Shown one piece after another: positions 7,602-54,618 of a stretch of 64,000 nucleotides of DNA. Under the pieces are notes generated by a model. The model was given only the letters and a program-made list of their open reading frames with translations. It had not been told where the DNA came from and did not search any database. Positions within the stretch are counted from its first letter, which is position 1, and every line of letters starts with the position of its first letter. The stretch comes from Schmidtea polychroa (Eukaryota). The stretch lies in assembly GCA_044892525.1 (NCBI GenBank), contig CM097886.1, forward strand, positions 44,516,001-44,580,000, read 5' to 3'. The position numbers and the translations under genes were made by a program.

Positions 7602-7697
7602 TCAATCGTCATCAGGAATGCAACCAGTTTTACAAGTTGGATGGCATGGTTTCTCGTTCACGCCACATCGACAACCTCCGGAAATATCTCCTTTTCC
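7602..7697 (-). CDS. RBCK1: Paralogue 1 terminal exon 8 (HOIL-1 C-terminal Zn-binding tail)
   Basis: ttaag|GGA...; GKGDISGGCRCGVNEKPCHPTCKTGCIPDDD*; 96 nt, phase 0. Confidence 0.92.
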   Translation of the reverse strand, partial: GKGDISGGCRCGVNEKPCHPTCKTGCIPDDD

Positions 7698-10600
7698 CTT
7701 AACAGAAATATAATTAACATAATCACTAAAAAGTAATTCGAATCGTATAAGATTTTTGAACAAATTAAAAGTACAAATAAAATAGTTCAGAAATATAAAT
7801 AATATAAATAGAGTATTGTTAAGATATTAACAAATTGTCGATAGGAATTCTGTCTCGATCTGATTCCTCGCGTTCAGTTAAAGTCAACAATCTAATCCAA
7901 ACAAAATAACTTTTATTCCAGCAAAAATTGAATACATACTGAAAGATCATTAAAAATTGTTAAAAATAATTAATTTTGATTAGACCTACATAAAACTTAA
8001 AAATCTACTATAAAGCGACTATTCATAATTATAAATCATTTATTCAATATTCTAAATCATTTATTCAATATTCTAAATCATTTATTCAAAATTATAAATT
8101 AATTATTCTAAATTATAAATTAAACAAAATAAAATAAATTATTATTTATTCTAAAAATTAATTTTGTCCCAGAAGAAACATAAGAAAGCTACGACGACAG
8201 TGTATAACTTTTATGTATTAATAGCAAACAAATAACCACATAATCATAGTTATGTAAAGTTTTGTTTGAATAATATTCGTTTTAGTGTGTTTTTGAAAAA
8301 TATATTTTATTGAATTATTATTGATTTATTTTATGAATTTAGAAGTTGAGGACATCATAACTGGCGACCACGCCAAGGAAATCAATGCGATAGGAAAAAA
8401 GAAAGGAACTAAGAATATGTTAGATTCCTTGTCAAAACAAGCACGTGAGATGCTAAATTTTAATGTCAGAAAGTTTGACGGAAAAGTTGGATCTGAAGCC
8501 GAACTTTGGCTAAAGGATATTATGGAATGGCTGAGAATAGAAGATCAAAGTCTAGTAGACGCATTGGATCTTTTGTTGACAGATGCGGCATCGATGTTAT
8601 GGGAAGCGGCGAAAATAGCGAAGATGACCGATGAAATGGCAAAAGAGTGGTTTATGGAAACTTTTACAGTAAGGAAAACCATTACTAACAAGATTGTGGA
8701 ACTAGCTCAAATTCAGCAAGAGAGAGATGAAAGATTCCAAGTCTTCGAAATACGAGTAAGAAGTTTAGTTAAAAGTGTATTTAGCTCTGGAATGTCTGAT
8801 GAACAGATTGTTCGAGACATTATCTCAAACAGAGCGAAAGACGATAGAGTAAAAGAAATATTCTTATCAGGGAAAGTGACAAGTTTTGAAGATGCCAGGG
8901 ATATGGCAAAAATTCAGGAGAAGATCGAGATGACGAATGACAATAAATTCAATATTGATGCCATAAGAAGAGACTCCTACGCATCAGTGATGAAAAATGG
9001 TAAATTCGAGGGTAGACGAGACCAAAGAACAATTGTGAAGACAACTGCACATCAACGCGACGAACACCGAGAGATTAATCATGAGAGGAATAGACCTGGT
9101 AATGGTCGGTTTGTACCAATTGTAAATGAAGACAAGAATGAAAATGAGCGGTATAGAGGACGATATGAGACAGTAGAACCAGAGAGAAGAATACCTACAG
9201 TATCGCTTAAAGATATTGCAAGAAGGTTATTTAATGACAGCAAAGGAAGAGATTCGCCTCATCCAGTGAAACTGACACCAGGTCAGTGTTTTTGTTGTGG
9301 AGAAAAAGGGCACCGGCGTTTTGAATGTCCAATGAAAGACAAATGTCTAATCTGTGGAAAAGAAGGTCATGGATTCAGAGATTGTTTTTTGCTTAAAAAT
9401 AGAAATGGATATCAGAAGAGAGTGGCATGTATTTACGAAGAAGATCACGAAAGAAATAATGGTGATTTAACAGAAGATTTATACAGTAATTACGAAGAAA
9501 CGATAAAAAAATCAATGGATAAACCAAAAAACAAGGACGATCCCATTGCTTTCATTTCGTCAGTGGGGTCGACACAATAATCAGTAGAAAGAAGCGAAAT
9601 GAAGACATGATGCAGAAGATGTATGAGACGACAGACAGAAGAAAGTGGAGTAAGATTGTAATAAACATGACGGCGATTGACATGCTTTGGGACTCTGGAG
9701 CGTCAGTATCAGTTATGAGTGAAAAAAGTTGGACAAAGATCGGGAAACCGAGGTTGAAGCAGAGCACAATTTCTCTTTGTGGAGTATTTTCGACGGGAAT
9801 GGAAAGACCGTTAGGAGCAATGACGATAGAAGCTGATTGGAATGGGAAAAAAAGAATTATTAATGTTATAGTTGTCAAAGATATACGTCCAGATTTCATT
9901 GGGGGTGTAGATACAATGGAGAGATTTGGTATTCAACTGGTAGAGGTAGACAATATTGAAGCGTCACAAGTAGGGAGGACATATGTGGACTCACAACGAG
10001 AAGAGAAAGCATTATTAATGCTTGGAGACAGGAAGAATGAACAGTTAGACATATTGCTACGGAAGTTCAAAGGTATTTTTATGGCTTCAACTTTTGATCT
10101 CGGGTTTACGAAAGTTGTTCAGCATGAAATGAATATAGTAGGTGGGCCTGTAATGTTACAGCCAAGAAGACAACCAATGCATTTAGAACAAAAGCTTGAC
10201 GAACTTGTCACAAACTTATTAGAAGCGAGAGTTATTAGAAAATGTAAAAGTGCATGGAACGCGCCACTAGTGATTGTGGCTAAGAAAGATGGATCAATAA
10301 GGATGTGTGTCGACTATAGAGGGTTGAATGCGATCACTGAAAAGATATCTTTTCCAATGCCAGATACACGATTTCTACTGGATTGTCTGGCAGATTCAAA
10401 ATATTTCACATCCATCGATCTAGGTCAAGCATATTATCAAGTTGGAATGGCGAAGGAAATTCAAGAGGTCACGGCTTTCAGTACAAGGCAAGGACAGTTT
10501 TGTTTTAACCGACTTCCTTTTGGACTAGCAACAGCCCCTGCGACGTTTCAAAGAATGATGCACTCAATGTTGGATGGAATATTATTTAAGGGTGTTGTTG

Positions 10601-13600
10601 TCTACCTCGACGACATTCTTGTCTATGGAAAAGACATAGAGGAACACAATAACCGATTAGAGGAAGTATTCAGAAGAATTCAACTAGCGGGGTTGAGAAT
10701 TAACCCAGAAAAATGTAATCTGTATAAAGAAGAATTGACATTCCTAGGGCACACTGTAAGTGCAAGTGGGATAAAAACGAACGACAAGAAGATTAAAGAG
10801 ATTCAAGATGCAGAAATACCAGTATGCGCCAAACAATTAAGATCCTTTTTAGGTATGACCAATTACTATAGGAAGTTTATAAAAGACTATGCGAAAATTG
10901 CGGAACCTCTACATGCAGCTACGTCCGGCTGTGAGAAAAAGATTAATTGGTCAGAAGATTGCAACAATAGTTTTGAATTACTTAAAACAAAGTTGTGTGA
11001 AGCTCCAATTCTAGATTACCCAAGAATGGATAGAAACTTTATTCTGGATACAGACGCTAGTTTTGGGGCCATCGGAGCAGTTTTATGTCAAGCTAAAGAA
11101 GATGGTACTGAAGTAGTAATTGCATATGGGTCGAGACACTTGACCGCACATGAAAAAGGTTATTGTGTGACTAGGAAGGAGTTACTTGCTATACACGAAT
11201 ATGTAATGTATTTTAAACAATATCTATACGGAAAGTCATTTGTAGTACGAACGGATCACAAGGCGTTGGTTTTCATGAGATACACAAAAAAACCGATAAG
11301 CCCGCAATTTCAAACCTGGCTAGCCAACCTTTCCGGATATGATTTCGATCTTCAATATAGGAAAGGAGAAGAACATGGAAATGCGGACGGAATATCAAGG
11401 ATTAAAGGGATGCTATGTGCACAATGCCAGACTAGACATGAAGACGCAAAAGAAGAAAAAGCCAGAGTAAGACATATCAGCTCATTACAGAAGACTGAGT
11501 CAATGACAATACTCTTAGAAAAGCAACAAGATGATGTAGATTTCATTCACATGACAAGAGTGTTACAGGGAGAAGAGAAAAAAGATGACTTGAATAAAAA
11601 GAAATTTCCTTTCAATTTGCATAACAACATAAAATTAGAAGATGGGTTTTTATTATTAGAGAAGAATGGTAAAGATGTCATCCTGGTGCCGATAGACTAC
11701 TCAAATACGTTAGTTAAAGGAATACATACTGAAATGTGTCACATTGGAGTAAAGAAATTAATTAGCTATATGAGCAACATATTTTTTTGGCCAAACATGC
11801 AAGAAACTATACAAAACTGTTTGAGAGTATGTGAGATATGCTGCAGAAGGAAAATAGTGCAGGAGAAGACAAAGGAACGATTGTTGCCGATAATAAGTTC
11901 AGAATTTTTAGAACAGTTGGTCATTGATATAGCACACATGAAGAATGGTGGAGTGTACAAGTATATGCTAGTTATCATTGATCGTTTTAGCAAAATGGAC
12001 AGACTGACCGCACTGGAGAGACAAGACGAGAGATCGATTTTCAAAGCCATATTGGAGAAGTGGATATATCGTTTCGGAAAACCGCGAAATTGTCTGTCAG
12101 ACAGAGGGAAGAACTTCGATAGTGGTTTTATGAAAACAAATCTAGGAAGACTGGTTATTACGCAACAGTTCAGTTCACCCTATCAGCATCAATCTAACGG
12201 TTTAGTTGAGAGAACAATACGGACAGTCAGAGACTTGCTGGCGACATCATTAGCAGGTGGACTAGGAGAGCGAAATTGGGCGGAGTTACTTCCTCGAGTA
12301 GAATTTTGTATCAACGTGACACAACAGAGCGCGACGGGATTTTCTCCATTTGAAATTGTTTTTGGGAGGAAGATTAACCTTCATTCAACATTGCCTCAGA
12401 CGACATTGGATACAGTTGAGATACATAGATTGGTAAGAGAGAACAGTGAGAAAGCAGCTAAACGAATGAAAGAGATGGAAACAGCGAAGAGAACGAATCG
12501 ATGTTTCACGGTGGGGGAGAAAGTATTAGTTCGGAAAGAACCACAAAATCGCGACAAAGATGGACTACAGTATGAAGGTCCGTTTGTCATATCAAAGTTT
12601 TTGTCAGAACACCAGGTGGAATTGAGTGACGGGACGACAAAGAAACTCAGACGAATTGAATGGCTTAAGAGATGGGCAGTTCCTTAAAGAAGGGGAGAGT
12701 TATGTAAAGTTTTGTTTGAATAATATTCGTTTTAGTGTGTTTTTGAAAAATATATTTTATTGAATTATTATTGATTTATTTTATGAATTTAGAAGTTGAG
12801 GACATCATAACTATCATGTCACAGATTTCATTGTAATACGCAGAGACGCAAGCAGTAGGTAAAAAAACCCTTCGAGATTTGTCTTTTTCAAGGATAATAT
12901 TTAAAAAAGTATTAAAGTTAATTAAATATATTTATAAAAAAATATTAAACACCAACATATTTAATAAAAAAACATCAAAATGTTGAAAGAATTCCCGGTT
13001 GTATGCAAAAACAAGGTATTCCCGCATTCTCTCATAATACAAACCATATAATATAAACGGATCCACATTCATTTCAGCAATAACCCTAGCTACATTCTCC
13101 TTTACAATTACAGATGTCGTTGGTTCGGGTCTAATTGCTGAATATCTACTTTGAATTATTGAGAATATGTTTTCAATTCGATTTAGACCCGGACTATAAG
13201 GGGGTAAATATTTTATGATAATGCTTTTACAATATCACTATGGTGAAATCTTACATTATCCGTAACTAATATATCATTTGCTTTTATTTGTAGTATATTA
13301 TAAGCTTCATTTAAAAATTCCAACAATTTCTCAGCATTATATGTAAAATCGTTAAAATAAAATAATTTTTATTTGACCTACATGATCCAATGGTGGCCTG
13401 TTTTTAAAGTCGATTTGACCTATATTAAACTGAAAAAAATCGTTAAAAATAATAAAAAATCTGAAAAATTTGTGAAAAAACATTGAAAATTAATAAAAAT
13501 GAAAAAATTTATTTGACCAACATAAAAATACTAGGAATTTTAGAAAATAATTTGTTATCCCTTGGGGTACTTGATCCAGCGGAGGCGAATCCAACAACTC

Positions 13601-16600
13601 AATGTCATATATTTAATATAAATAACATTACATTTATTTTAACTTTCATTGTTATTTGCGAATATAATTAAAATGTTGACGAATAAAATATATAATTTAA
13701 TACAATTAATACAATAGTATAATATACTAATACTTTTCGAGTGGTTTCGTTTGGTCACCATCAGATCTTACATAAGATAAATGTAATATGAAATATTAAA
13801 AATAATATTTAGTTACGTATTCACGAGTTTTGAACATTAAAATTACTTTTGGTCCCCAACGCGGAATTTTCAATATCCAGCATAATTCCAATTTACATTG
13901 AGGGCATTTGATCCAATTACATCCACCAGCTTTTTTAATGAGACAACCACAAGTCGTACATTTCATGCACTTTCCGTCTTTAATTTCTTTCTAGAAAAAT
14001 TGTTGCACTCATTGAAATAAAAAATAATTTACTTCAATATATTTAATGCTCATGTCATCAACGAAGGATGCATCTCCTTTAGAATGCTGAAATTCTGCAC
14101 AGGTTTGATTATCTTTATGAATGACATTGCACATTATACAATTTAACGAATGACAAATCGGACAAACAAAATTTTCCAAATCTGGATCACAAATACCGAA
14201 ATATTTGCAATCCGGCGTTTTACAATGAAATATATTTTCCAATTTTGATTTGGCCACTATTAAACACTTTTCTTGGAAAACCTCGATGTCTCGTTCATTC
14301 AAAATCTTGTAATATTAATTTAAATTAATGAATTTATAAAAATTCAGTAAAGTTATATTATTCAAAAGAATTAAAAAGATTATAAAAGAAATAAAGATTA
14401 TATTTATTATCTTTTAAGATATTGGAAGTAAAAATAATACAAGTCACAAAATTCCCATACTAATAATTTGAGATGTTTGTGAACGACCTAGACATTAAAA
14501 TTTTTTTATCATGGCTTAGAGTACACTTATCTCAATATATTCATTTGGATAAGCAATAAGGATTTGCGAGGCTACACTGGAATGTCCCGATTAAAATTTA
14601 TTATAAAAACCAAATTAGATTTATGAAATACATAATCAAATAATTTTTGAAGGGAAACAAACTTAAAAATCTGCATGAACCCTGCTGAAATATGAAAAAA
14701 AGGTTTTAATTTTTAATATCATAGAAGTTGTGTCGGTTAGGTGTTTGTTTGGTTAACAGTTCGGATATTTAAATTAAATTGTTTATAGTTTACGTAGTAA
14801 GTATAATTTAAAATTTTGATATTATTTAACTAATTATGCCATACCTTTAACTATAGTTTGAAAATGCCAAAAAGATCTTGCCAGTATTTGTTATATAAAG
14901 ATATATATAAAGATATATATAAAAGTTATATATAAAGATATACTGAAGAGTATCCGTTTATAAAGAAAGAAAAAACAAACACCGAAGTAAGCCATGGTGG
15001 TATTTCGGACATTAAAAAGCATATATTTCATCAAAAACAAATATCTGCTGTACGTCCATCCAGCAATTGTAATAATTTAAGGTCTTATTTTGTGAATCCA
15101 CAAAACGATCAGAACGAAAAAATTATAAAGAAAAATATAAAGTTAATGAAATGAATTTGAATTTTTATGTTCATATTAAATTTAGTTTATTTTTATAAGC
15201 ATAATAAATTAATATATTAAATATAAAAAAAATGTTTTGAACTGTCCCGATTTAAGTTTTGAAAATTCTGGCAAGCATATTATTACAACGCTATGGTGAA
15301 GAATACGACACGCGTATAACCTTGATTTGACAAATCTCTCCCAACTGAGAAGTGTAATAATTGGTAATTTTAACTGGTTGTTTCCTGATTTGACTTGGAT
15401 TTGTTCGTCGAACTTTACTCTATTATCACTAAATAAACTCTTGCTGCTTCTTTTTATTTCCGTTTTCTCTTTAATTTCTCCGCATCAATTTTATTCAAAT
15501 TCTCCAAATAAATTAAATATTATATCTCCAAATTATTCCCCAAATTTCCTTTAACTGGTCCTTCCCAAATTGTTCTCTCGACTGTTCCTTCTAATTCTTC
15601 TTCTAAATTGTTCTCTCTATAGTTCTTCCTGCTTCTGCTGAGCTACTTCCTTTTATACCTCGTCAATTTGTGGCACTTTAGTTTATCTTCAATTTCCCAA
15701 TTTTTCCTGCGACCGAGTTATCTTTGACAGCTGTCGAGATATTTTCTAATATTTCCTTTTTACGGCTCCGGCCTGTTTTTGTTTTGATCCCGTTATCTCT
15801 GACAAGCTGTCGAGATAAGAATATTGTTTTTCTATTTTTCCGATTTCGAAATTCGTTTTCCTTTCTGTACTAATTAATTAGCACTGACCTTTGTTTTTGC
15901 TTTCATGCCTGATTTCTTTTGTTTCATTTCTCTTTCCCATTTCTTTTTACTTCCGTTTTCTTTTCTGAGTTCCCATACATCGTCCCGTTTGTCATGACAA
16001 TCTTCCCCAAGTAATTTTATTTATTTATAAATTTGTTATTTAGGTATCCTCAACATTTGCATGATCTTATTGTATTAATCTCTTCATCACAAAACAATTC
16101 ACTTCTACCTTCTGCTAAAGTACTATTTTCCATTTTTTATGAAAATCTATTAGTTCAGTTTTCGTTTACCGATTAATTTTATTATTTCAATTATTCTTTC
16201 GAATATTTGTCAATTTATGACATTTACTTGGTTCTGTTTATTAAATATACTATAAATGTCTTTGTCGTTAGTTTTAAAATGTATGCTTCGGTACATGCAG
16301 TATGAAGTAAAAACATTTTATGTTCTGCAATTCTATGATAAACATGTGTAGCATTCCTAATGTCATAACCATTTGTAAATAGAGAGTTATCGAAATTTGT
16401 ACAAAAACCTAAACAAAACGAATAATAAAGCCTATCGCTTTTAACATTTGGTGGGTTACAGATGGTCGAATATTTACTCTTCCGTGCTGTTACCAGCGTA
16501 GCCCAAAATACAACATTGTTTTCCGCTTGGTACCCGTTGAGTAATCAACGTTGGTACTGTACCAAGGGGTTGAGTACTCGCAAAAAGTGAGCGCACCAAG

Positions 16601-25600: not shown

Positions 25601-25661
25601 TTGCCTTATACTAATAATAGTGATAATAATGATGAAGTAATAATATTAATAATGATAAAAC

Positions 25662-25737
<76 letters not shown>

Positions 25738-28700
25738 TAATATTACAATTAAATATTAATTAATAAATTTTTGAACAAAAGTTTCAAAAAAAACTGTTAT
25801 AATTTATAATAATCTATAATCATATATGTTTCATTTGGGTAAAAATTTCTCTGCTTATTCCTTTTCCTCCAATGAAAACAGGGAATCGAAAATTTGTCCT
25901 TATTGGAGAAGAGGAATCAATCCATAAATACAATTGTCTTTAATTAAAAATAATTGAAAATATTAATTTATATTTAATATGAAAATTAATGTCCCCTTTT
26001 ATAAGTGAGTATTTTTTTTCACATTTAAAATTTTCAAATCTATTGTTGGCAATTGGACAAAATATTTCAGTAAATCTATGAATTTTTCTTTTTACATTTA
26101 ATTTTACAAAAGAGATATTTTCCGATGCCAAAAAGTTGATCTTCTTTACTGAATTTTGGACCTTGAAGCAAAATTAAAGACAGACAAACACATATGAAAA
26201 ACAGATGAAAATATTAAACAAGTAAGAAGTTATTATAATTATCAACCTATGTATCAAAATACTGAAATTCAACCCGGCCAGGAAACGAAGCGAAAAGGAC
26301 ACTCATCGCTAGTGTCTATGATTTTATCAACATAAATGTTTTCCAAGATGCGACAGAACCCGAAACCCACAATCACTATTCCTCACCACAGAACCATGTC
26401 AATGGCAAAACTTTGTTACTACAAAAAAAGGAAAAGTGCAATGCAGTTTTTAATTCAATGATAAGTTTTAACTTATTTCGCGTAAAATTTAATAAATTTT
26501 TCTTATTTGGTTACTGTGTTTCATATTTATATAATTTTTCTTTTAAAAATTTACCACAATTTATTCGTATACTAGATCAGGGCTGTCCAACTGGCGGCCC
26601 GCGAGTACCTTTTACTATGAATAAATTTATTTTACTAAATTATTATTATTAATATTAAAATTATTTTACTATGTGAAAATTTACATCTAATTTGAATTTA
26701 AAATAGGTACTATTTAGTTTACGTAACTTCACTTAACCTGGCTGAATACAGATGATAGTTGGCTCAACTTTGGTGCAACATATTATATTTGTGGTCGGTT
26801 GGTTTATCTATGGTTGGTGTATGTGATGCGCAAACTACCCTGCGCTATTTAGTTGATTCATGCAATCGTGCGAGTGCAGTCTTGTCTAGAATTTGCTGAG
26901 GGGTGACTGTGTTATAATATTATTAACTTAATTTCATAATTATTTATTATTTAAAATAATTATTGAATATGAGTGCTAATAATAAAAGAAAAATAGACCT
27001 CGAAAATCTAGAATTTCAAGATCGCTGGGAGATAGATTATTTATTTATTCTGAACAAGAATAGTAAACCACAGTGTTTGGAATGTTTACAAATCATAGCT
27101 GTGGTAAAAATATAACTTGAAGCGCTATTATCTTTCGATGCATGAAAAGTATCAACCGTACACGCGAGACATGAAAATACCACTAGTAAAAGAAGTAAAA
27201 AACAGCTGGATCATCAAACAAACTATTTTAATCAAGAATAAAAATTTCTAGAAGCATATGCAGCTGCATCGTTTGAAGTTTGTTTAGAAATAGTAAAGGC
27301 AAAGAAGCCATTTTTAAATGGAGAATTAATTAAAAAATGTACAATAAAAATGGCTCAAGCATTTAATGACAACGAAATGATAAGAAAATTTCAAACAGTA
27401 TCACTTTCTCACCAGACTGTAAGCCGACATGTAAATGAGATTAGCATGTATGTCACTAATAAATTAGAAAACTTAATCAATAGTTGCTGCTATTTTTCGG
27501 TAGCATTGGATGAAAACCCAGAGATTTCTGATACAAGTCAAATGCTTATCTTTATAAGAACTGTATATGAAAACTATAATTATTCAGAAGAACTTTTAAA
27601 ATTACAATCATTACACGGAACAACAAAAGGTGAAGATATTTACAAATAATTAAAATGTGCAGTAGAGCAGTATGGCGGATTTGACAAGTGCACTGCTATT
27701 GTAACCGACGATGCTACAGCTATGACGGGCAAAAACATTGGGCTTGCGGGACTTTTGCAAAAAGAAGGAATAACATGTCGTATGTTTCACTGTATTATCC
27801 ATCAAGAGGCATTATGTGGTTTACCCCTACAACTAAAAGACGTAATGGACAAGGTTTGCAAAATTACTAATTTAATTCGCGGTGGAAATCGTTCTCTTAC
27901 ACACCGAAAATTTAAAAAATTTTTTGGATGAATTGGAAACTAAGTATGGAGTAACACAGTAACGTTTATTGGTTAAGTGCTTGAGGAGATTCTTCACACT
28001 TCGAAAAGAAGTTCATCTTTTTCTCACAGAAATTGCCGTCGATGAAAGTTTGACAGCAAATTTAGTCGATAAAAATTTTATTTATTCACTTGCTTTCCTA
28101 ACGGACATTACAAATTATTTAAATATTTTGAATAAATCATTGCAAGGACAAGATCAAAATTTGTGTTGCCTTTATAAATATATTACGGGATTTAGAAACA
28201 AATTAAAATGTTCCTGAAAGTTATTTGAAAATATTATTATATCATCAATATAAACTAGTTCGTTTGGGATGTTCCGTAACACAAAATTCATACCTCGCTG
28301 GTATTGATTTACCATTAATTGTTATGCTTCCCTTTATATATGATTTTTTTTTGGTTTTTGCGCTAACCCCAACAATGAAATGAAAACAAAATTGTACATG
28401 TTTGAATAGACTAATTTATTCTTATCAAAAATTAAGTGGGAAACTTGAGCGTGGTGTTCCTTGCACAACTCTTTAAGATTCGGTCGTGTTTTTGACAGAC
28501 ACATATGAAGTTCATCTTCCAGACAGCTGTTGGAATTTTCTAATAGAGTAATCCGGCTCACCAGCACAAAGGTGTTTTCGATTACAGAGACTCCTGATAG
28601 TTCATGTGCTCTGGCTGGGTCAGAAGGGTTATGTGGTTTTTGTTTTAGTAATAAATTTCGTATTAATGTTTTATGTAGTTTTTCAACTTAATTATTTTAA

Positions 28701-31700
28701 ATGTTAAAAAAATCTTCTTGCTAAATTTAAATAAATTAGTATATAATAATTCACCATCAGTATGTATACGTAATAGAATCCTATTGATTAGATTAGTTTA
28801 ATAGAAATCAAATCTAGGAGTTACTTTAATGGATACAATGTTTTTTTCTTGCATATAAATAGATTTTGAAGTACTCTATTTAAATATAAGGGTTTGTTAT
28901 CGTTTTTTGTATGGAAGATTTTGTGGAAATATACCATATTTATGCACTGATGCAGTAAAACAAGTTCGAATTATTTTAATTCTAGTACATTCGATTCATA
29001 ATTTTTTATCAATTTTTATGGCGATTTTTGTGCAATATATTTTATTTTTGAATTATCTTTTTATTAAATTTACCTTTTCCAGGGCATTTCCAGAACAGTC
29101 CATGCTATTTTAACCTAATTCTTGTTTTTAATTGCTTTTTTCTTAATTCTTTTTATGAATTTTGTTATTTTAAAATTTAAATATTTATTTTATAAATTTT
29201 ATTTGATCGTTTGGCGGTCATGATGGATTTCGCCATTTTGATGGGTTATTCAGGTTTTTTCAAATTTTTGCACAATTTTTTCTTTAAACTACGTTTCGTT
29301 GTGATTTTATGGAAATTTATGGAAATTAGTTTATTGTTGTAATGTGTTTTTAGGTTATATCTGAGTATGTTTCATGTAAATACTTCTTGCTCGAGTTTTC
29401 ATTTTATTTTTAATTCGGATGCTTTATTATTGTGTATTGTATTTCTCTATTATATCTGTTTTTTATATTTTTTATAAATACTCTTACTGCTGAGTATGAG
29501 TAGGCTTGCCAGAATTTTTAAAACTTAAATCGGGACAGTACAAAACATTTTTTTATATTTAATATGTTAATTTATTATGCTTATAAAAAAATTAACTAAA
29601 TTTAATAGGAACATAAAAATTCAAATTCATTTCATTAACTTATACATACATATTATACATACATTTTAAACAAACAAAACCCAAATTTATAATTCTTATA
29701 ATGATGAACCAGGGAAAATATAACAATTTTTTAACAGCTGAAACTAGTAAGGGAAATTGTGTCATGTAGATATTCTCCTGTACGATATTCTATATCTATT
29801 AAATAGATATTCTCCTATTCAATAGAATTCTGCAAAATCATGTTAAAAATGATGTCCAATGTGCGTATGAACTATTGCTAGACATAATACATTGATGGAA
29901 CTCAATTGCGTCTTTGATAGAAAGATTTTTGAAGTTAGAAAAACCAATTTCTCAAAAGATTTAAATTCTTATTATTAGACGGATAAAATTAACTTGGGGC
30001 TTATGAAAAATATGAGTCTTTCTCTACAGCCTTATCAGTGGAATCATTAAATCGAAAAGACGTTTTATATTTCTTAAGAAACAAAATAGAAGTAGTCGAT
30101 TCGGAAATAAGTTGGGATATGTTCCAATCAATTTAAAATCGCATTGAATCTCGAAAAAACGACAACATTACGGCTTTAATAAAATGGGTTTTTGACCAAA
30201 ATTCAATAAATGGTCCATCAAATTGATTCATTTTCCATGATGAGACTATACATCAATCGGAAGATGAATAAGAAATTCTGCGTGAAGAATCCTCGAGTTG
30301 AATCAGAATTAAAATTAATTGAAAAGAACTAAATTCATACATGTCGAATGCGTCCAACATCAAACAGGTAAGAATATCAAATAATAGTACTTTAGAATAG
30401 AATTTAAAATGTTCAAAAATTCCAAGAGAACACAAAATCTTGAACTGCAATTTCCGCACCAAAATTAGATCTCACTTTTCTTGTACATCACTTAATGCAT
30501 TAGAGTTCCTGAAATACTACTATTTACATAAAAAAGAACAAGTAAAAAGAGCTTAGTTATTTTAAATTTCATTAAAAAAAATAAAAATATTAATAAATTA
30601 TGAAATTCAATATAATTTTTTATGCGGTTATCCACTATACGTGTATAATTATAAAACTTCTATCCAATAACCACGGTTACAGGAAATCCGGATATTAGGA
30701 AACTCTAACAAAAAATTATAATTTCATTCAGTGACAAACTATTTTAAATTGTCAAGGACACGTAAGAATCTTTTATTTCAGAGGATCCTAGTTTGCTCAC
30801 TTGCTAAAAACACATGTTGCCATGTCTTTGGGTTTTTACATTCGAAATTTAGGTTCTGGAAATTCAACCCCTAATAACATCGCAGATATCGTAATAATAA
30901 TAGGAATACCAGTTTGATCTGAACTTCAAAAATATGCACAAGGAAAGAGACATGTTGGGATTATTGGCTGATTGACGTTTGAAAATCACAAGCTGGTTAG
31001 AGTAAAAAGAACGTCGAGAAAAAAATAGGTGAGCGAGATAACCCACAGAAGATTGAATAAAACTACACCCTTCTCATCTCTATGAAAGTAAAGAGATTTT
31101 CGATGCGGATAATACAGCATCAGATTATATTGTAAAATATCATGGATTTTGAGGTTTACTACTCTAACTCAGAAGCGGTACCATGTTTCAAATGATATTA
31201 ATTCCGTTATTTGGTGAATTATTGGATCGTATATAAATGAACTTTACTAAACACCAAGTCAAGTGTTTAACAAGTATGAGTATATTGTGTTAAAATTATT
31301 GCATAAATTGCATGGTCATGTTTGATTTTTATGTGTCATTAACTATGGGAATCAGAGGATAAACAGCTCATGAAAATTATATTTAAAAAATTTAAATGTC
31401 AGTTGATCCCAAAATTGTAGACAGTCCGATATCGAGTGTTACAGGAGTGATATGGTTCGTGGCTTAGTGGATGATTTCAGGATCTATAATGATGAAGCCC
31501 CAAAGAAACATTCGACCTACCTTTGGGTGAAGTAAGACAAAAAGCAATGGTGGACTGATGACTTGCTGATTATCGTTAACAAGTATTTTTGAATGAACGA
31601 ATTCACGTTCAAGATATTGGGTTGTCGAATGAGAGAAAAATTACATATCCTCCATTTTCATCTTTAATGCTTCTCTGAAGACCTGGGTGCGTACAGCGAT

Positions 31701-33625
31701 GAACACAAAGAAAGATTCCATCAAGACGTTTCTGAAATGGAAAGAAAATATCAAGGCCTCTAGAACGTATATATAATGGCTGATTACTATTAGTGTTTGG
31801 AGCGGCACAAGCCTGTTTCACATAAAAAGAAATCGCGTAGCTCCTGCATAGCTCATCCATTTAAATATATGAGGGATCACGTTTTTATTGTTTTTTATAA
31901 ATATATGTATATATAACTTAAATGTAGGATCTTCAAAATTACACGTGATCTCTAGTTAGCTGCTTAAAATCATTTATTGACATGAAATTCTTTACGGAAC
32001 TTTGCTTAGAAAAATGAATGTGCTGTTGTTTAAAATCTGAACATGATAGAGAAAAATGAACTTCAGATTAATAATCAACATGCACATATGCAAAGGAAAC
32101 ACCTGTTGAAATGAAAACAAGCACAAAAGTTTTCAAATGAAGACCAGTGTAATACGCAATTCAATAGAAAATCGATATTCAGATAAAACTGAATAAAATT
32201 CCAGGTTATCAATAAAAATTAAATGTTATTTCAAAGGAATAAATAAAAAGGAATAAAAAAGGAATAAAATTTCTCTTCTATTGTATGTCCAATTAGGAAG
32301 TGTTTATTTGAACGTGTGAATGTTTATTTGTTTTTTTTAATTTTGTATTTTCGGCTATCGAAGTGTTTGATTAGGTGTACGAAATTTAAAATTTTTAAGT
32401 TAAATTCTATCCTAATTCAGTAAATGTGTATTTTCCAAAACTGTAAGATTAAATATATAATAAACTTTATATGAAGTACATTTGTTTATAAAAGCTATTT
32501 ATTGATTTTTCCAATTTAACCACTGATTTTTTTTCATTGAATTTATTTAAAAGAGCTTTGACACTATAAATCAATAAATATATCGATATTTTTGATATTC
32601 ACGAATTTTTGGCACTGCCTTTTTATATTTATATTTTTATATCGATATATTTACTGATTTATAGTCTCCAAACTCTTTTTAATATATTTATTGATTGTTT
32701 ATATCAACAATCAATAAATATATTAACATTGATTAAATAAGTAATATCTTTTGACCATTTACAATTTTTGGTTTCTGACTTTTTGACTTTACGCACATTA
32801 TCAATTTAACCGGAAAATTCGTTTATCCGGTCTTTTTTTTCAAAATTCCCGGTCCCGCTCCATCCCGATAAACGGGGTTTTAATGTAAACAGAAAACACA
32901 TTTTGTGATTATAAAGAAAATATACCGACGCATAATTAACTGAAAATTGTGTGCTGGATGTATTTCGAATTCATCCTGACTGCATGATTCTAAAAAGGAT
33001 ATACTTGTATGCAACGAACGATGTACACATTTTCCTGCTTACAGTAGATTGAATTTGTAAATGGCCCGCAGAATTTCTTGAGTTATTTTAGAAATAATTG
33101 CATTTTGTTTGAACATTCGTTTATAGGCTTTAACTCATTGTGCAAAGAAAGGACTATATTGAGAGTTTCGCACCTAAAGAATAGGAAGATTTTTTTGTGT
33201 AATTAAAACTGTTGAAAGTTCCCTGAGTTCAAGTCCAAATAATGAAGATGCAAAATGTGAATGATATCTCCAGAAACATTGTCGATGTAATAAAAAAAAA
33301 GCTAAATCCGTTGATATTTTAAATGGTAATGAAATGAATGCTACTTCAAATAAATTAACACAAGAATTTATGAAAACCCTTTCGAAAATTACTAGTTATT
33401 GCAAAATTAAAAAACTCCACATTTTAATTGATTATTCAAAAGTATTCATTTACACAATTATATTTATTAATGAATTATAAATAATTTTATAAAATTAATT
33501 CTATATAGCAAATGCAAAATCTCACCTCGCGTATTTCTCTATCTTGAATTTTAGAATTGCAGTTGCCATGTAAACACTGGACTGGTATATTTACAGAATT
33601 CTTGATATTGTCATTCAAGCAATTT

Positions 33626-33683
<58 letters not shown>

Positions 33684-36600
33684 GATGGTTTTTAATTTTT
33701 TTTTAATGCAATCCTGACTAAACTAAATTTTTCTTTACTGATATTGTGGAATATGTTAGTTTACAATCATTTCCCGACAGGGTAGCATAGGGTAGCAACC
33801 CAAAAAGTGGGTTATAAAATAAGAGAATATATACTATCTTAAATGAAAAGAAAACTTTATAAAGCAACCTAAATTTTACGAACTCTTTAATAAATCGAAG
33901 AGGTGCAGAAAACTATTATCCTTAAATAGTTAAAAAACAAAACGGTTTCAAAAATCCTTTAATCATCGGTTTTTGGATTCCATTCTCATTCAAAAGATCT
34001 GCGTATGTGTGCCTTTAGTAGTATCAATGAAATTGAGCCTCTATTTGAATATATTTTGGGTGTAGTTGCATGAACGTTGAGTATATACAGGTCATTCATC
34101 ATTATAGAATGAATAATAGAAAGTAGGGAACTCGCATTTCTGTTTTAAGGACATAAATTTGATTATTTAACTTCCTACATCAATATTAAAATAAGCCCTC
34201 CAGGAACCTTAATATATAATTGATACAAGAATTCTAAAAATGCTTTTAACATGTAATTTCTTGCATTCTTTGTCTATGATGAGGTAGATAACGTTTTTAA
34301 AGAAACCAATTTTTTCGTAACTGCAATTTTTAATTGGGAAATAATTTTTTCTTATTATTTGAGTTAACAGGACGTATTTTATTGCTAAAAATAAGTGTGG
34401 TACACAAATTGGAAAGCCAGTTAATATAACTGTCATTTTAATTTGTTAAAGAACTAAAACTATTTAACCAAAATATAAATTAATTTTTATAAATTTTCTA
34501 GATATGGAAAAATTTTTTCTAACTTTTTATGCAATATCAGGATAGAGTAGGGGTGGGGACCCTTTTTATTTCCGTAGGCCACATTGAAATTTGTCGCCTC
34601 CATATGTGCACCTGTTTCTCCTAGTACAGACAATGTTCTTGAAAGATTTAGTCGCACAATAAAATCACGGTTTGTAGAACATGAAACGTCCTCGATGAAG
34701 AATTTCATCAAAATTTGTCAAATCGAAGAACTTAATAGTGCGTGTTTAGACAGACCGCTATACGATACGTTCGAGTTGTGTGAGAATATTCAGTTTTTTT
34801 TTCAATTTTTGTGTGAAATCGGTAATAAAAATGTCATAATAGTCTCTAAACATTCATTAGATTCCAGCGAAATTGACTTACTATGTTTTTAATACTTGAA
34901 TTTGGATTTTGAGAGATTTTATATTTAAACATGTGTTTATTGTGACTAATAAGTTGATAACTAGCTATTTGGGTCTCCAGTGCTCGTGTTTTGGTTTCGT
35001 TAAAAATAGAAGATGTAATCATATCTATAACTTTCTAAAAAGTATTAATAAGTTGAATATCCTTTATTGTTCGATTGTTAAGAGGAGAAAACGAAAAGGA
35101 AGACCAACTGCTAAAATTGCAAAAAATCCAGCTCTGAAAAAACTATCAGTCCATACCAAGGGTGGGGAACCTTTTTATTTCCATTATTTGAAATTTGTCG
35201 CCTCCAAATGGGGCCGCAGTCAGAAAGTATTTTAATATTAATTAATTTCATTTTAAATCTTTTGTTTGTATACAGTTAGTAATTAAAACAATGTTTATAA
35301 TCAGTCTGCTGATTTGAATAATGCAGCTGTACGAAATATTCTGGAAAATGTTTATTATTTCTGAATCGAATAATTGATGCAAATAAGTCATCGTTTCACA
35401 AATGAGTGCTCAATAATCTCATTTATTCGTCTACGTAAGTTTTGTATTTATGGGTGTGAATGATTGAATTTTATATTTCGTTCTTTGTACTCGGTGGGAT
35501 GCTTGTACAGTACGATATATACAGTTCAGTAGTTACAAGTATTTTTATTTGTGAATCATCACAATTCATGGTTTTTATATAAATTAAGATTTATTTCGAT
35601 AAGGCTTCGAAGGTCGCATGAGGCCTAAAGGCCGCAGGTTCCCCATTCCTGGTATAGAGTGTGCAATATGGTACAGCTTATATTTTGATGATTTTCTACT
35701 TACTACACTAAACTAAATGTTGCCTATACTAAATACGATATATTCTTTTCTATGCAAGAAATGACGAAAAAAAAATGGAGAAATATTTCAATGCCAATAC
35801 ACCAAGATATAGAATCTTAACAAAATATATTTCGATTACTTGCCGATGTATGGGAAATTCAGTTAAGGCTTATGCATTTATATGTATTCATATTGTTAGG
35901 ATTGCCAGTTTAATTAAATATTAACAATTATTGATCTAACTCCGAAGCGTGCCTTGTTTAACAAAAATAATGAGTTTCAGACAATATAACTTTTATTGAT
36001 CTGTATAGTTGATTACCAATTTACCGCGACACAATTAATTGAATATTACAACTAGGCTTCTTAGGTGCTTATTGTGACCCTCAGGGAATATTGATATTGA
36101 CTTTCGTTTATATTCCCTATGGTCAAGATATGTAATTTTTAGAAGACACCATTTCTCAGCTACCTCAGTGATCTCTTTCCGTAATCTCGTAAAGACATAA
36201 CTTAAAGATATAACTTAATTATTATGTTGAATCGTAATTAATCGATTCTCGCTACCACAGCAATTAATATAAATGGCAATATTCCCGGATGGGATAATGA
36301 TTCTAAATTTCGCATAAATTATAAACCTCACCTGCAAAACACATGACAACAATTCCTCAATTTTACTCCCAATCCTTTCGGTATAATTTTACAGCAAATT
36401 AAACATGTAAAAGTTTCATCATTCGGTAAAATGCCATGCGATTCGAGTTCTTGATCATTAGAAACGGTCTGTTGATGTTTTACTTGCAATAATACTTCAT
36501 TAGCCCTTTTCCTTTCATTTTTCTGAAATATCTTTAAAGATTTCAAATTAATATTAACGGTTTACATCCATAGTTTCTAAATATTCTTTATCTCTTTGAT

Positions 36601-37132
36601 TTGTCAAAGCCGAGATTTTCATATTTTGATACTGTTTACAGCTAATAAGTGGATGGGTAGCTTCACATGATATACAATTAAACATTGAACATATTGTACA
36701 TTCAAATTGAATTTCTTTCGCTGTATAAAAAACTATGTTATCACAATTAGTTAATAGGCACTTGTAAATTTGTTCTATTTTCGAAAAGCTTTTTAATTCA
36801 TAATCATAAATTCTATTATTTGGTAGAGCCTTGAGAAAATTAAGATTTTATAAAAAGATTTAAATAAAAACAAACCTTTCTAATGATAGCGTCATTAATA
36901 TTTGTATTGCAATCATTAATTGGACAACGAATTTTCGAATCTAAATTCGAATCAATATAATTCGCTAAACAACTCCTTTAATGAAATTAATTAGAAAATT
37001 ATTCAAAAATTATTAACAACCAACCAGCAAATTATGTGACCACACTTTAAAATTTCAACTTCAATTCTTTCTAAATCAGAAGACTGACAAAATTTACATT
37101 TAATACTATTATCAGACATTGATGCACAAATC
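7602..37132 (-). CDS. RBCK1: HOIL-1/RBCK1-like RBR E3 ubiquitin ligase, paralogue 1 (gene span, 8 coding exons, about 423 aa from ATG at 37119), with duplicated RING1-IBR module
   Basis: Exons 37132-37025, 36975-36876, 36829-36566, 36531-36332, 33625-33526, 14305-14033, 13990-13847 and 7697-7602 join in frame through GT-AG introns of matching phase. HOIL-1 signatures: FHCKTPDC, GCNWIKC, RWGP, GDISGGCRC..PCHPTC. Confidence 0.9.
8032..8094 (+). repeat. 21-bp tandem repeat x3
   Basis: taaatcatttattcaatattc at 8032, 8053 and 8074 (last copy diverged). Confidence 0.9.
8248..8362 (+). repeat. 5' LTR (AGTTA...TAACT)
   Basis: Identical by eye to 12698-12812; 5-bp terminal inverted repeat. Confidence 0.97.
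8333..9580 (+). CDS. gag: Gag (two CCHC zinc knuckles); first ATG lies inside the 5' LTR
   Basis: Open frame from ATG 8333; RKFDG..WL capsid-like N-terminus; CFCCGEKGHRRFEC and CLICGKEGHGFRDC. Confidence 0.92.
   Translation: MNLEVEDIITGDHAKEINAIGKKKGTKNMLDSLSKQAREMLNFNVRKFDGKVGSEAELWLKDIMEWLRIEDQSLVDALDLLLTDAASMLWEAAKIAKMTDEMAKEWFMETFTVRKTITNKIVELAQIQQERDERFQVFEIRVRSLVKSVFSSGMSDEQIVRDIISNRAKDDRVKEIFLSGKVTSFEDARDMAKIQEKIEMTNDNKFNIDAIRRDSYASVMKNGKFEGRRDQRTIVKTTAHQRDEHREINHERNRPGNGRFVPIVNEDKNENERYRGRYETVEPERRIPTVSLKDIARRLFNDSKGRDSPHPVKLTPGQCFCCGEKGHRRFECPMKDKCLICGKEGHGFRDCFLLKNRNGYQKRVACIYEEDHERNNGDLTEDLYSNYEETIKKSMDKPKNKDDPIAFISSVGSTQ
8362..8374 (+). promoter_or_regulatory. Primer-binding site, probably tRNA-Arg; overlaps the LTR by 1 nt
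   Basis: TGGCGACCACGCC directly at the LTR end. TGGCGACC(A/G) PBSs are complementary to the tRNA-Arg 3' end, as in 412/mdg1-type elements. Confidence 0.7.
9523..12687 (+). CDS. pol: Pol polyprotein (protease, RT, RNase H, integrase), in the -1 frame
   Basis: LWDSGAS; MCVDYRGLN; YLDDILVY; LDTDAS..ELLA..TDH; H-x4-H..CEIC; IDIAH, SDRG, VERTIRT; YEGPF. Confidence 0.97.
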   Translation, partial: TKKQGRSHCFHFVSGVDTIISRKKRNEDMMQKMYETTDRRKWSKIVINMTAIDMLWDSGASVSVMSEKSWTKIGKPRLKQSTISLCGVFSTGMERPLGAMTIEADWNGKKRIINVIVVKDIRPDFIGGVDTMERFGIQLVEVDNIEASQVGRTYVDSQREEKALLMLGDRKNEQLDILLRKFKGIFMASTFDLGFTKVVQHEMNIVGGPVMLQPRRQPMHLEQKLDELVTNLLEARVIRKCKSAWNAPLVIVAKKDGSIRMCVDYRGLNAITEKISFPMPDTRFLLDCLADSKYFTSIDLGQAYYQVGMAKEIQEVTAFSTRQGQFCFNRLPFGLATAPATFQRMMHSMLDGILFKGVVVYLDDILVYGKDIEEHNNRLEEVFRRIQLAGLRINPEKCNLYKEELTFLGHTVSASGIKTNDKKIKEIQDAEIPVCAKQLRSFLGMTNYYRKFIKDYAKIAEPLHAATSGCEKKINWSEDCNNSFELLKTKLCEAPILDYPRMDRNFILDTDASFGAIGAVLCQAKEDGTEVVIAYGSRHLTAHEKGYCVTRKELLAIHEYVMYFKQYLYGKSFVVRTDHKALVFMRYTKKPISPQFQTWLANLSGYDFDLQYRKGEEHGNADGISRIKGMLCAQCQTRHEDAKEEKARVRHISSLQKTESMTILLEKQQDDVDFIHMTRVLQGEEKKDDLNKKKFPFNLHNNIKLEDGFLLLEKNGKDVILVPIDYSNTLVKGIHTEMCHIGVKKLISYMSNIFFWPNMQETIQNCLRVCEICCRRKIVQEKTKERLLPIISSEFLEQLVIDIAHMKNGGVYKYMLVIIDRFSKMDRLTALERQDERSIFKAILEKWIYRFGKPRNCLSDRGKNFDSGFMKTNLGRLVITQQFSSPYQHQSNGLVERTIRTVRDLLATSLAGGLGERNWAELLPRVEFCINVTQQSATGFSPFEIVFGRKINLHSTLPQTTLDTVEIHRLVRENSEKAAKRMKEMETAKRTNRCFTVGEKVLVRKEPQNRDKDGLQYEGPFVISKFLSEHQVELSDGTTKKLRRIEWLKRWAVP
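9526..9604 (+). promoter_or_regulatory. -1 programmed ribosomal frameshift signal (A_AAA_AAC plus H-type pseudoknot)
   Basis: Heptamer 9526-9532 in gag phase; pol frame opens at 9523; stem 1 9539-9547/9562-9570; stem 2 9550-9559/9595-9604. Confidence 0.8.
12686..12697 (+). promoter_or_regulatory. Polypurine tract
   Basis: AAAGAAGGGGAG immediately 5' of the 3' LTR. Confidence 0.9.
12698..12812 (+). repeat. 3' LTR
   Basis: Identical to the 5' LTR; followed by TSD ATCAT. Confidence 0.97.
12975..13355 (-). pseudogene. IS630/Tc1-superfamily transposase C-terminal fragment
   Basis: Manual translation gives LVTDNVRFHHS and, after a disruption, YLPPYSPGLNRIENIFS (D34E-type motifs). Confidence 0.75.
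13847..13990 (-). CDS. RBCK1: Paralogue 1 exon 7 (RING2 with catalytic Cys)
   Basis: ttctag|AAA...AAA|gtaatt; KEIKDGKCMKCTTCGCLIKKAGGCNWIKCPQCKLELCWILKIPRWGPK; 144 nt. Confidence 0.93.
14033..14305 (-). CDS. RBCK1: Paralogue 1 exon 6 (IBR #2)
   Basis: acaag|ATT...GAA|gtaaat; FHCKTPDC..CPIC..NCIMC..H..TC; 273 nt. Confidence 0.93.
15141..15279 (-). mobile_element. hAT-type terminal fragment (TA(T/G)GCTTGCCAG end); inverted partner at 29501-29642
   Basis: About 140 bp near-identical to the reverse complement of 29501-29642. Confidence 0.75.
16474..17851 (-). other. GC-elevated island with three short ORF remnants (one ending in an AT-hook, one coiled-coil-like)
   Basis: 17851-17504 reads through one TAG to ...APPRKRGRPRKHPL*; about 17230-16850 is Q/R/E-rich and helical; 16707-16474 is a third ORF. 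Confidence 0.4.
24400..25435 (-). mobile_element. Long LTR remnant beginning TGTTGGGG after a PPT (left boundary approximate)
   Basis: Minus strand AAAGGGGAGATA|TGTTGGGGTTAGTGC at 25435; its first about 72 bp recur at 28302-28374. Confidence 0.6.
25662..25736 (+). repeat. (AAT)25 microsatellite
   Basis: Perfect trinucleotide run. Confidence 0.98.
26578..28215 (+). mobile_element. Buster/Charlie-type hAT transposon (GTF2IRD2/SCAND3-like transposase pseudogene), 3'-truncated
   Basis: Left TIR CAGGGCTGTCCAACTGGCGGCCCGCG; KPFLNGELIK, SLSHQTVSR, FSVALDE, TTKGEDI, TDDATAM, HCIIHQEALC, LAFLTDI. Confidence 0.9.
28302..28374 (-). repeat. Second copy of the TGTTGGGG LTR 5' end
   Basis: Direct repeat of 25364-25435 with few mismatches. 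Confidence 0.85.
29501..29642 (+). mobile_element. hAT-type terminal fragment (TAGGCTTGCCAG)
   Basis: Inverted copy of 15141-15279. Confidence 0.75.
30850..31130 (+). pseudogene. Possible pogo/Tigger transposase fragment
   Basis: Degenerate Y..KEIFDADNT resembling the pogo IFNADET motif; multiple stops. Confidence 0.35.
31430..32149 (+). mobile_element. Chapaev3-like (CMC) DNA transposon 3' remnant
   Basis: LGCRM..KLHILHFHL..SEDLGAYSDEHKERFHQDVSEMERKYQG..MADYY; ends in ...GACCAGTG followed by TAA. Family assignment is from recalled motifs only. Confidence 0.55.
32549..32679. repeat. Imperfect foldback (about 40-bp arms)
   Basis: aaaagagctttgacactataaatcaataaatatatcgatat pairs with atatcgatatatttactgatttatagtctccaaactctttt. 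Confidence 0.8.
32800..32888 (+). mobile_element. pogo/Tigger-type terminal remnant
   Basis: ...ccgataaacggggttttaatg|ta resembles a Tigger TIR end with TA TSD. Confidence 0.45.
33526..33625 (-). CDS. RBCK1: Paralogue 1 exon 5 (RING1 #2, C-half)
   Basis: tatag|A AAT TGC...GAG|gtgaga; (R)NCLNDNIKNSVNIPVQCLHGNCNSKIQDREIRE; 100 nt, phase 2 to 0. Confidence 0.9.
33631..33680. repeat. (AT)25 microsatellite abutting the exon 5 acceptor
   Basis: Perfect dinucleotide run ending a few nt from the AG at 33627-33626. Confidence 0.98.
34548..35651 (+). mobile_element. Composite Charlie-type hAT MITE with duplicated left end enclosing a MULE transposase 3' fragment
   Basis: Left ends at 34548 and 35157 (.A.GGGTGGGGA.CCTTTTTATTTCC...TTGAAATTTGTCGCCTCCA); right end GGTTCCCCATTCCTG; TSD GGATAGAG / GTATAGAG; internal STDNVLERFSRTIK and SWIM-like CSC-x7-CNH, RKRKGRP. 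Confidence 0.7.
36332..36531 (-). CDS. RBCK1: Paralogue 1 exon 4 (linker plus RING1 #2 N-half)
   Basis: ttaaag|ATA...TGC AG|gtgagg; ILPNDETFTCLIC..VKLRNCCHVFCR; 200 nt. Confidence 0.92.
36566..36829 (-). CDS. RBCK1: Paralogue 1 exon 3 (IBR #1)
   Basis: ctcaag|GCT...GAT|gtaaac; YKCLLTNC..FECTIC..NCISC..H..SC; 264 nt; not in the ORF track. Confidence 0.88.
36876..36975 (-). CDS. RBCK1: Paralogue 1 exon 2 (RING1 #1 C-half)
   Basis: ttaaag|G AGT TGT...AAG|gtttgt; SCLANYIDSNLDSKIRCPINDCNTNINDAIIRK; 100 nt. Confidence 0.88.
37025..37132 (-). CDS. RBCK1: Paralogue 1 exon 1 (RING1 #1 N-half); candidate ATG at 37119, further upstream exons not excluded
   Basis: tatag|G ATT...TGC TG|gttggt; MSDNSIKCKFCQSSDLERIEVEILKCGHIICW. 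Confidence 0.82.
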
Positions 37133-37440
37133 CTATATAATAATTAGTAAAATTACAAAATCAGATATAGGATCCAATTCAAATTAAGCAAACGGTGAAT
37201 CTAAATATTAAAACGAACAATGAAATATCAAAGTCTGTGAATTTTCTAAATGTAAATTATTTATGTAAAATTGACTTTATTTTCATAATTAAAACTTAAA
37301 TTTGGTCATCAAATAAATTTTGGACTTCGATTCACAATATAACTAATTGTGATAAATTAAATAAAATAAAAATTTATTGTAATAATCTTGCCAGTGGAAT
37401 AGAATTTTAAATTGTATGTCTCATTTTTCGTTATTTAGGT

Positions 37441-54528: not shown

Positions 54529-54618
54529 TTAATGTGGCTGGCAAGAACTAAAACAACGAGGGTCACATCGTTTACCGTTCACGCCGCATTTACATCCACC
54601 AGAGATATCTCCCCTTCC
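54529..54618 (-). CDS. RBCK1: Paralogue 2 terminal exon
   Basis: attaag|GGA; GRGDISGGCKCGVNGKRCDPRCFSSCQPH*; 90 nt. Confidence 0.9.
   Translation of the reverse strand, partial: GRGDISGGCKCGVNGKRCDPRCFSSCQPH

Follow-up and report, generated by a model that had tools for sequence, protein, structure and literature searches.

The RING-between-RING (RBR) ubiquitin ligase HOIL-1 (RBCK1) carries a UBL domain that binds HOIP and an NZF domain that binds linear ubiquitin. The human protein (structures 8EAZ, 7YUI, 7YUJ, 8BVL, 9EGV) has a core of a helix, RING1, IBR and RING2, which is followed by a tail with a Zn2/Cys6 cluster. The hallmarks of the enzyme have been described in detail (PMC9834252). 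Namely, W462 takes the place of the His of other RBRs, two positions beyond the catalytic Cys; E471 precedes the first Cys of the cluster, whose spacing is C-x19-C-x-C-x6-C-x3-C-x2-C; the C-terminal H510 is the general base for hydroxyl transfer; the Zn-loop II of RING1, between the seventh and eighth ligands, has 8 residues; and V284, the hydrophobic residue after the first RING1 Cys, touches F63 of the E2. In the human protein, the RING1-IBR forms a site for di-ubiquitin and cooperates with the NZF (PMC10575588). Here, we describe a gene, further called gene A, in a stretch of 64,000 nucleotides from Schmidtea polychroa (GCA_044892525.1, contig CM097886.1, positions 44,516,001 to 44,580,000; the whole stretch is called the window below). 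We read its 420-amino-acid product, at a probability of about 0.6, as an RBR of the HOIL-1/RBCK1 family that belongs to a divergent subfamily, in which a second RING1-IBR replaces the UBL-NZF part and would serve as an accessory unit for ubiquitin docking or regulation.

The eight exons of gene A lie on the minus strand, and the coding sequence runs from 37119 to 7602 (Table 1). When the DNA was read and spliced, all introns were found to be of the GT-AG type and the exons to form a single open frame of 1263 nt (420 codons), in which the domains follow each other as RING1a-IBRa-helix-RING1b-IBRb-RING2-HOIL-1 tail. RING1a with IBRa is called module a, and RING1b with IBRb module b. The seven introns measure 49, 46, 43, 2706, 19220, 42 and 6149 nt. 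As short introns are typical of this genome (49, 46 and 42 nt in this gene), we consider the 43-nt intron 3 ordinary rather than suspicious; its retention would close the frame after 4 further codons. The preliminary description of this DNA had placed the eight exons in the same way and in a continuous frame, apart from one acceptor, and Cys-rich stretches free of stops were found on the minus strand at precisely those places. It had also pointed out that the two modules share their exon architecture, and this observation holds: both have a phase-2 split inside RING1, a 100-nt exon for the C-terminal half of RING1 and a phase-0 IBR exon of 264 or 273 nt. This common exon pattern fits a duplication of three exons.

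The structure of the transcript was examined using RNA contigs. Runs X1–X3, originating from two studies, showed exon-only coverage of the gene, whereas the coverage by run X5 was continuous and DNA-like. Five joints were present in the contigs of X1–X3 (37025/36975, 36876/36829, 36566/36522, 36332/33625 and 33526/14305) and none of the five in X5. Record 6 of X1 spans 37124-37024 and is spliced onto exon 2. At the joint of exons 3 and 4, records 17 and 18 of X3 connect 36566 straight to 36522, and the loose ends of the X1 and X2 contigs match it. The loose end at 36332 corresponds to the start of exon 5. The contigs of 606 nt contain exon 5 and then the first 30 nt of exon 6, as their 30-nt loose end at 33526 matches the sequence from 14305 downwards; the 33526/14305 junction predicted earlier is therefore seen in RNA. 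The true acceptor of the exon 3–4 joint is 36523/36522. The acceptor 36532/36531, which is also in frame and had been chosen in the preliminary description, with exon 4 starting at 36531 and a protein of 423 amino acids, was ruled out, because the RNA joins 36566 to 36522 and gives 420. The claim that exons 1–3 and exon 4 belong to one transcript is borne out by the same joint. Gene A is one real, expressed gene, joined in RNA through junction 5.

There is no in-frame Met in exons 4 and 5, and the catalytic half can therefore be translated only via exons 1–3. These data bear on another explanation, according to which the continuous frame is artefactual or comes from a fusion in decay, with exons 1–3 left over from a third, dead tandem copy and included by read-through. 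The gene does lie in a tandem array with active gene conversion, as described below, but the exon 3–4 joint was found in three RNA runs, and exon 4 has no start codon of its own. Moreover, the upstream tandem copy (paralogue B) has the same architecture and an intact frame, and the architecture is kept in P0007 and P0050, two full-length relatives of 417 amino acids that were found as mRNA-like contigs of public data and are 37-40% identical. We regard this explanation as extremely improbable; on the same grounds, the reading of gene A as a pseudogene or chimera was ruled out.

Table 1. Exons of gene A and related features of the window (positions in the window; all on the minus strand).
Feature	Position	Strand	Length	Content
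Exon 1	37025..37119	-	95 nt	ATG at 37119; N-terminal half of RING1a (C-x2-C ... C-x-H-x2-C); ends in phase 2
Exon 2	36876..36975	-	100 nt	C-terminal half of RING1a, with a 4-residue Zn-loop II
Exon 3	36566..36829	-	264 nt	Phase 0; RING1a-IBRa linker helix, IBRa, then a helix
Intron 3	36523..36565	-	43 nt	GT..AG; spliced out in RNA
Exon 4	36332..36522	-	191 nt	Pre-RING1 helix and N-terminal half of RING1b; 79% identity to the paralogue exon
Exon 5	33526..33625	-	100 nt	C-terminal half of RING1b
Exon 6	14033..14305	-	273 nt	Phase 0; RING1b-IBRb helix and IBRb
Exon 7	13847..13990	-	144 nt	RING2, with the predicted catalytic Cys in G-C-N-W, Glu and the first cluster Cys
Exon 8	7602..7697	-	96 nt	Predicted Zn2/Cys6 tail C-x-C-x6-C-x3-C-x3-C, ending in IPDDD, then TGA
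Tract shared by gene A and paralogue B	36289..37122	-	834 bp	Ungapped, 91.5% identity; partner at C2:44583941-44584774 (L001 3941-4774)
Paralogue B, last three exons	54529..57988	-		IBRb 57719-57988, RING2 57531-57674, tail 54529-54618

The preliminary description had placed the second intact RING1-IBR where the UBL and NZF would be expected, and several observations agree with it. No UBL or NZF was found upstream of gene A. Among the RNA contigs, the one reaching furthest 5' starts at 37124 and has 5 nt ahead of the ATG, and the RNA depth is zero over 37232-37480. In the mRNA contig of P0007 (L009), the ATG is preceded by a stop codon in frame. No NZF-like exons were found near the window, as the only matches in the genome lie at 155.22 and 156.61 Mb of the same chromosome (C2), at the loci of canonical HOIL-1. 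The canonical HOIL-1 gene, at about 155.21 Mb (L007), has an NZF-like exon 4 kb upstream, and a second such locus is present at 156.6 Mb. This gene resembles gene A in its 100-nt exon for the C-terminal half of RING1, in the phase-2 split and in the 4-residue Zn-loop II. It differs in having one RING1-IBR, in encoding IBR and RING2 in one exon and in a tail that ends in C-G-N-C-H as in the human protein, and it is closer to an RBCK1-like protein of Branchiostoma (53% over IBR-RING2). The genome also gave two weak matches to the HOIP C-terminal family PF18091 (26 bits, barely over the cut-off) at C4:69669302-69669403 and 69726961-69727047, so that a HOIP-like gene may exist in it.

The comparison of the catalytic half of gene A with human HOIL-1 points to the same type of enzyme. 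Among the solved structures, human RBCK1/HOIL-1 was the best match for both IBRs, namely for IBRb at E=2e-12 (over about residues 345-417 of the human protein) and for IBRa at E=7e-6. The RING2 of exon 7 matched Pfam IBR_1 at E=3e-6 and passed the family cut-off. The order typical of RBRs was seen in module b and RING2 from the Pfam matches (IBR and IBR_1), from the Cys in G-C-N-W and from the fold match of P0007, which has an identical architecture at about 40% identity and was used as a stand-in for folding and for the complex test. The P0007 model (predicted local distance difference test score, pLDDT, 83.6) matched the HOIL-1 structure 8eaz_A at E=1.6e-23, and its RING2 matched 9egv_A at a template modelling (TM) score of 0.82 and a root mean square deviation of 1.1 Å. 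With the best matches of both IBRs and this fold match, the earlier assignment to the HOIL-1 type stands.

At the level of residues, exon 7 carries G-C-N-W-I-K-C and K-L-E-L-C, and both the Trp and the Glu of HOIL-1 are thereby kept. None of the six Cys of the predicted Zn2/Cys6 cluster is missing, and the spacing is identical up to the fifth Cys (C-x19-C-x-C-x6-C-x3-C), whereas the last interval is x3 in gene A, paralogue B and P0007, and x2, as in the human protein, in P0050. The end of the tail varies within the family: gene A has C-I-P-D-D-D and lacks the terminal His, paralogue B and P0001 end in C-Q-P-H, and P0050 in C-I-P-H. The last two endings may be a shifted equivalent of H510. The Zn-loop II has 4 residues in place of the human 8 in RING1a, in RING1b and in the canonical HOIL-1 of the same genome, and it looks like a trait of the lineage, since the canonical protein has it too. 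Module b has a pre-RING1 helix, and its RING1-IBR spacer is of the human length, 38 residues; the residues equivalent to V284, I358, W379 and F381 are hydrophobic. To judge from these features, module b and RING2 likely form a working RBR. The protein thus has in common with human HOIL-1 the helix-RING1-IBR-RING2 core, the Trp behind the catalytic Cys, the Glu and the six cluster Cys with their first four spacings, and differs by the absence of UBL and NZF, by the extra N-terminal RING1-IBR and by the changes in the loop and in the tail.

The Cys and His ligands of RING1a and IBRa are complete, as had been claimed for module a, and they are kept in paralogue B, P0007 and P0050, that is, in relatives 35-57% identical; in the fragment P0010, one module-a ligand is changed. 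Exon 3 gave a Pfam IBR match at E=1.2e-3 and is 91% identical to the paralogue. Residues 1-190 of P0007, when modelled alone with AlphaFold, reached a pLDDT of 86, and modelled residues 1-144 aligned to HOIL-1L 277-424 (Z 11.2, 143 residues), to ARIH2 134-262 (Z 12.2) and to other RING1-IBR units. The look-up of P0007 in the ESM Atlas gave generic IBR clusters and nothing else. In sequence and in the model, module a qualifies as a genuine RING1-IBR unit: its RING1 is of the C3HC4 type, its IBR is of the C6HC type, and a helix links the two.

A complete RING1 might be a second dock for E2~Ub, as the preliminary description suggested; the ligase could then carry two E2~Ub simultaneously, or RING1a could supply RING2, in cis or in trans. 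The eight Zn ligands and the RBR-type RING1 fold of RING1a agree with such a role, as does the Phe found in gene A at the position equivalent to V284. Across the family, however, this position is F/S/N/L in RING1a, while in RING1b (I/I/L/L) it is always hydrophobic, and the position equivalent to L301 is G/K/N in RING1a versus C/Y/Y/F in RING1b. Module a also has no counterpart of the pre-RING1 helix, and 34 residues separate its RING1 from its IBR, against 38 in human HOIL-1 and module b. The comparison of residues speaks weakly against an E2 site; the binding of E2 by RING1a appears unlikely, and we hold a second dock to be quite unlikely.

As the human RING1-IBR is itself a di-ubiquitin site, module a is most simply read as an added ubiquitin-docking or regulatory unit. 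In the complex test, residues 1-145 of P0007 combined with ubiquitin of the same genome scored 0.35, against 0.01 for the best control, which gives weak support; at least 92% of the contacts agreed between the runs, and the pLDDT of the partner was at least 84. In the calibration of this test, 51 of 78 solved complexes and 2 of 108 mismatched pairs attained the mark. Passes at 0.60 or below comprised 5 of the 78 solved complexes and all 4 of the mismatches that passed, and a pass at the level of 0.35 is more likely to be false than true if the pairing was not probable beforehand.

Extra domains autoinhibit many RBR ligases, and module a could accordingly be an autoinhibitory decoy, as was also suggested in the preliminary description; it would cover RING2, or the surface of module b that receives the E2, and be displaced by a signal, like the Ariadne domain or the REP and RING0 of parkin. 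The long helix predicted between the modules (residues 145-183 of P0007) could act as a hinge in such an arrangement. On the other hand, the predicted TM score of the P0007 model is just 0.50, which is too low for contacts between the modules to be read, and the sequence indicates no release signal; we consider autoinhibition unlikely.

According to the reading that we prefer, the working enzyme would consist of the helix, RING1b, IBRb and RING2. RING1b would take E2~Ub, the Cys of G-C-N-W would form the thioester and the Zn2/Cys6 tail would shape the acceptor site. Module a would load no E2 and would act as an extra docking site for ubiquitin or poly-ubiquitin or as a regulatory unit, doing in part the job of the canonical NZF. 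Since the protein has no UBL, we expect it to act outside LUBAC, the complex that assembles linear ubiquitin chains. The chemistry of the acceptor may differ as well, since hydroxyl transfer by human HOIL-1 depends on a terminal His, which is absent from the tail of this protein.

Paralogue B has an intact frame of 417 amino acids in exons of 95, 100, 264, 191, 100, 270, 144 and 90 nt; its first five exons (L001) lie just beyond the end of the window and its last three within it. The tract shared with gene A extends from 3 nt upstream of the ATG to 43 nt into intron 4. Within it, the exons are 91.1% and the introns 92.8% identical, whereas the identity of the remaining exons is about 75%. The synonymous divergence (dS) between the two genes is 0.13 in module a versus about 0.9 in exons 6–8. 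This tract is probably the product of gene conversion. Because its introns are as similar as its exons, the similarity of the two genes in module a is no evidence of selection. Constraint on the sequence of module a is shown by the deep comparisons instead of by this pair.

Further members of the family were found elsewhere in the genome. A cluster on C1 (207.09-207.18 Mb) contains three genes with exons in the order IBRa, RING1b, IBRb, RING2; their RING1a exons were not located in the 0.6-3 kb of upstream sequence examined. The family counts five or more genes in this genome. A full HMMER scan with IBRa returned no more than 49 proteins at E<=1e-3, among which were P0007 and P0050, the fragment P0010 and a UniParc protein in which IBRa is connected to RING1b at identical residues. 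The word-indexed protein searches with P0007 and with the family alignment returned 3 and 5 proteins, respectively, and have little bearing on the spread of the family. In the tree of RING1-IBR modules, the a-modules of the family formed one clade (100/99) and the b-modules another (97/98), two Culex modules were sisters (93/85), and two mite modules fell into a clade with a long-branch tick module (92/97). These groupings indicate one duplication before the family diversified and a separate one in Culex. The three-exon duplication proposed in the preliminary description is thus consistent with the exon pattern, but it is an old one, common to paralogue B, the C1 cluster and the mRNAs of other species, and did not arise in gene A.

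The same tree gives 2.54 changes per column on the branch of module a after the duplication. Such a long branch followed by conservation suggests a new function, and one may suppose that module a recruits a substrate or partner or dimerises, in a role unrelated to ubiquitin or E2; the expansion to five or more genes would agree with it. Still, no partner is known, the exons of the converted tract are no better kept than its introns, and diversifying selection is not apparent between genes A and B. We find this explanation improbable.

Several points weigh against the accessory role of module a and the gene model that underlies it. The accessory role rests on sequence comparison and modelling, and the residue comparisons were made on alignments of four to six sequences. 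The score of the complex test may reflect the memory of solved RBR–ubiquitin complexes. The ratio of nonsynonymous to synonymous divergence between genes A and B (dN/dS 0.51, 34 changes) was tried as a test of selection on module a and rejected as uninformative, since the tract is converted. The RNA joints cover junctions 1–5, and the joints of exons 6–7 and 7–8 rest on GT-AG sites, the frame and the continuity of the mRNA-derived P0007 and P0050. Finally, the AG at 37134-37133 could accept an upstream exon.

Proteins with comparable arrangements were found in arthropods. An RBCK1-like protein of Culex (XP_039438340.1; UniProt B0W023, 'ubiquitin conjugating enzyme 7 interacting protein') has the same order RING1-IBR-RING1-IBR-RING2 in about 407 amino acids and lacks UBL and NZF. 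It differs by its independent duplication and by a Zn-loop II of 9-10 residues, and the 407-residue form stops soon after RING2, without the Zn2/Cys6 tail. A protein of the mite Halotydeus (KAI1285162.1) and the cluster of the tick Dermacentor (XP_037579011.2) are likewise HOIL-1-type RBRs with extra N-terminal RBR parts. The mite protein, however, consists of two whole RBRs in tandem, and the tick proteins have arrays of lone IBR-like fingers and a further RING1-IBR ahead of a canonical RBR. In the open-access literature, we found no description of a tandem or duplicated RBR or RING1-IBR, nor of RBR or RBCK1 in planarians. Whether the architecture was already catalogued had been left to be checked; it is rare and no paper on it was found, but the Culex protein with the same domain order is already in NCBI and UniProt. 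As far as we found, the doubled RING1-IBR is a rare architecture that is already deposited as sequence and seemingly undescribed.

The window is AT-rich (26-40% GC) and holds open reading frames (ORFs) of transposons. Within intron 7, on the plus strand and antisense to gene A, a 419-amino-acid gag-like ORF with CCHC knuckles and a 1026-amino-acid pol-like ORF with motifs of protease, reverse transcriptase and integrase occupy 8321-12687; by these motifs, the element is a Gypsy-type long terminal repeat retrotransposon. Fragments of transposase-like ORFs, which we take to be hAT-like by impression, are located at 27350-28217 (plus strand, in intron 5) and at 62951-63763 (minus strand, upstream of the IBR exon of paralogue B). 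An open frame of 219 amino acids at 41911-42567 (minus strand) lies between the paralogues and may be a transposon remnant, and positions 5467-5805 consist of 339 N, representing a gap or masked sequence. In the genome as a whole, at least 150 strong ubiquitin-domain matches were present among 1240 candidates, many of them as tandem pairs in frames of 400-1400 amino acids at scattered loci. These pairs look as if they were carried by a repeated element and do not look like ordinary ubiquitin genes.

As to its scope, the finding concerns a domain-architecture variant of an expanded family in a non-model animal, and similar sequences have stood unremarked in public databases. Meanwhile, HOIL-1 itself is being actively studied, both as an enzyme that attaches ubiquitin to Ser/Thr and sugars through ester bonds and with regard to its activation by ubiquitin chains. 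Taken further, the doubled module could be a recurrent route to a reader of poly-ubiquitin in HOIL-1-type ligases, taken separately in this flatworm-like lineage and in Culex and in related forms by mites and ticks. The added module would then dock further ubiquitins of a chain beside the allosteric site and replace the NZF, giving a LUBAC-independent, chain-activated enzyme whose acceptor chemistry in gene A is altered by the loss of His; we offer this broader proposal as a doubtful one. The independent duplication in Culex, the tandem RBRs of the mite and the IBR arrays of the tick suggest that such an arrangement is of use and no accident. The RING1-IBR forms the allosteric di-ubiquitin site of human HOIL-1, and natural proteins in which it is doubled while UBL and NZF are missing are a ready test of what this unit does alone, and the members without the catalytic His, gene A included, are a natural probe of acceptor specificity.

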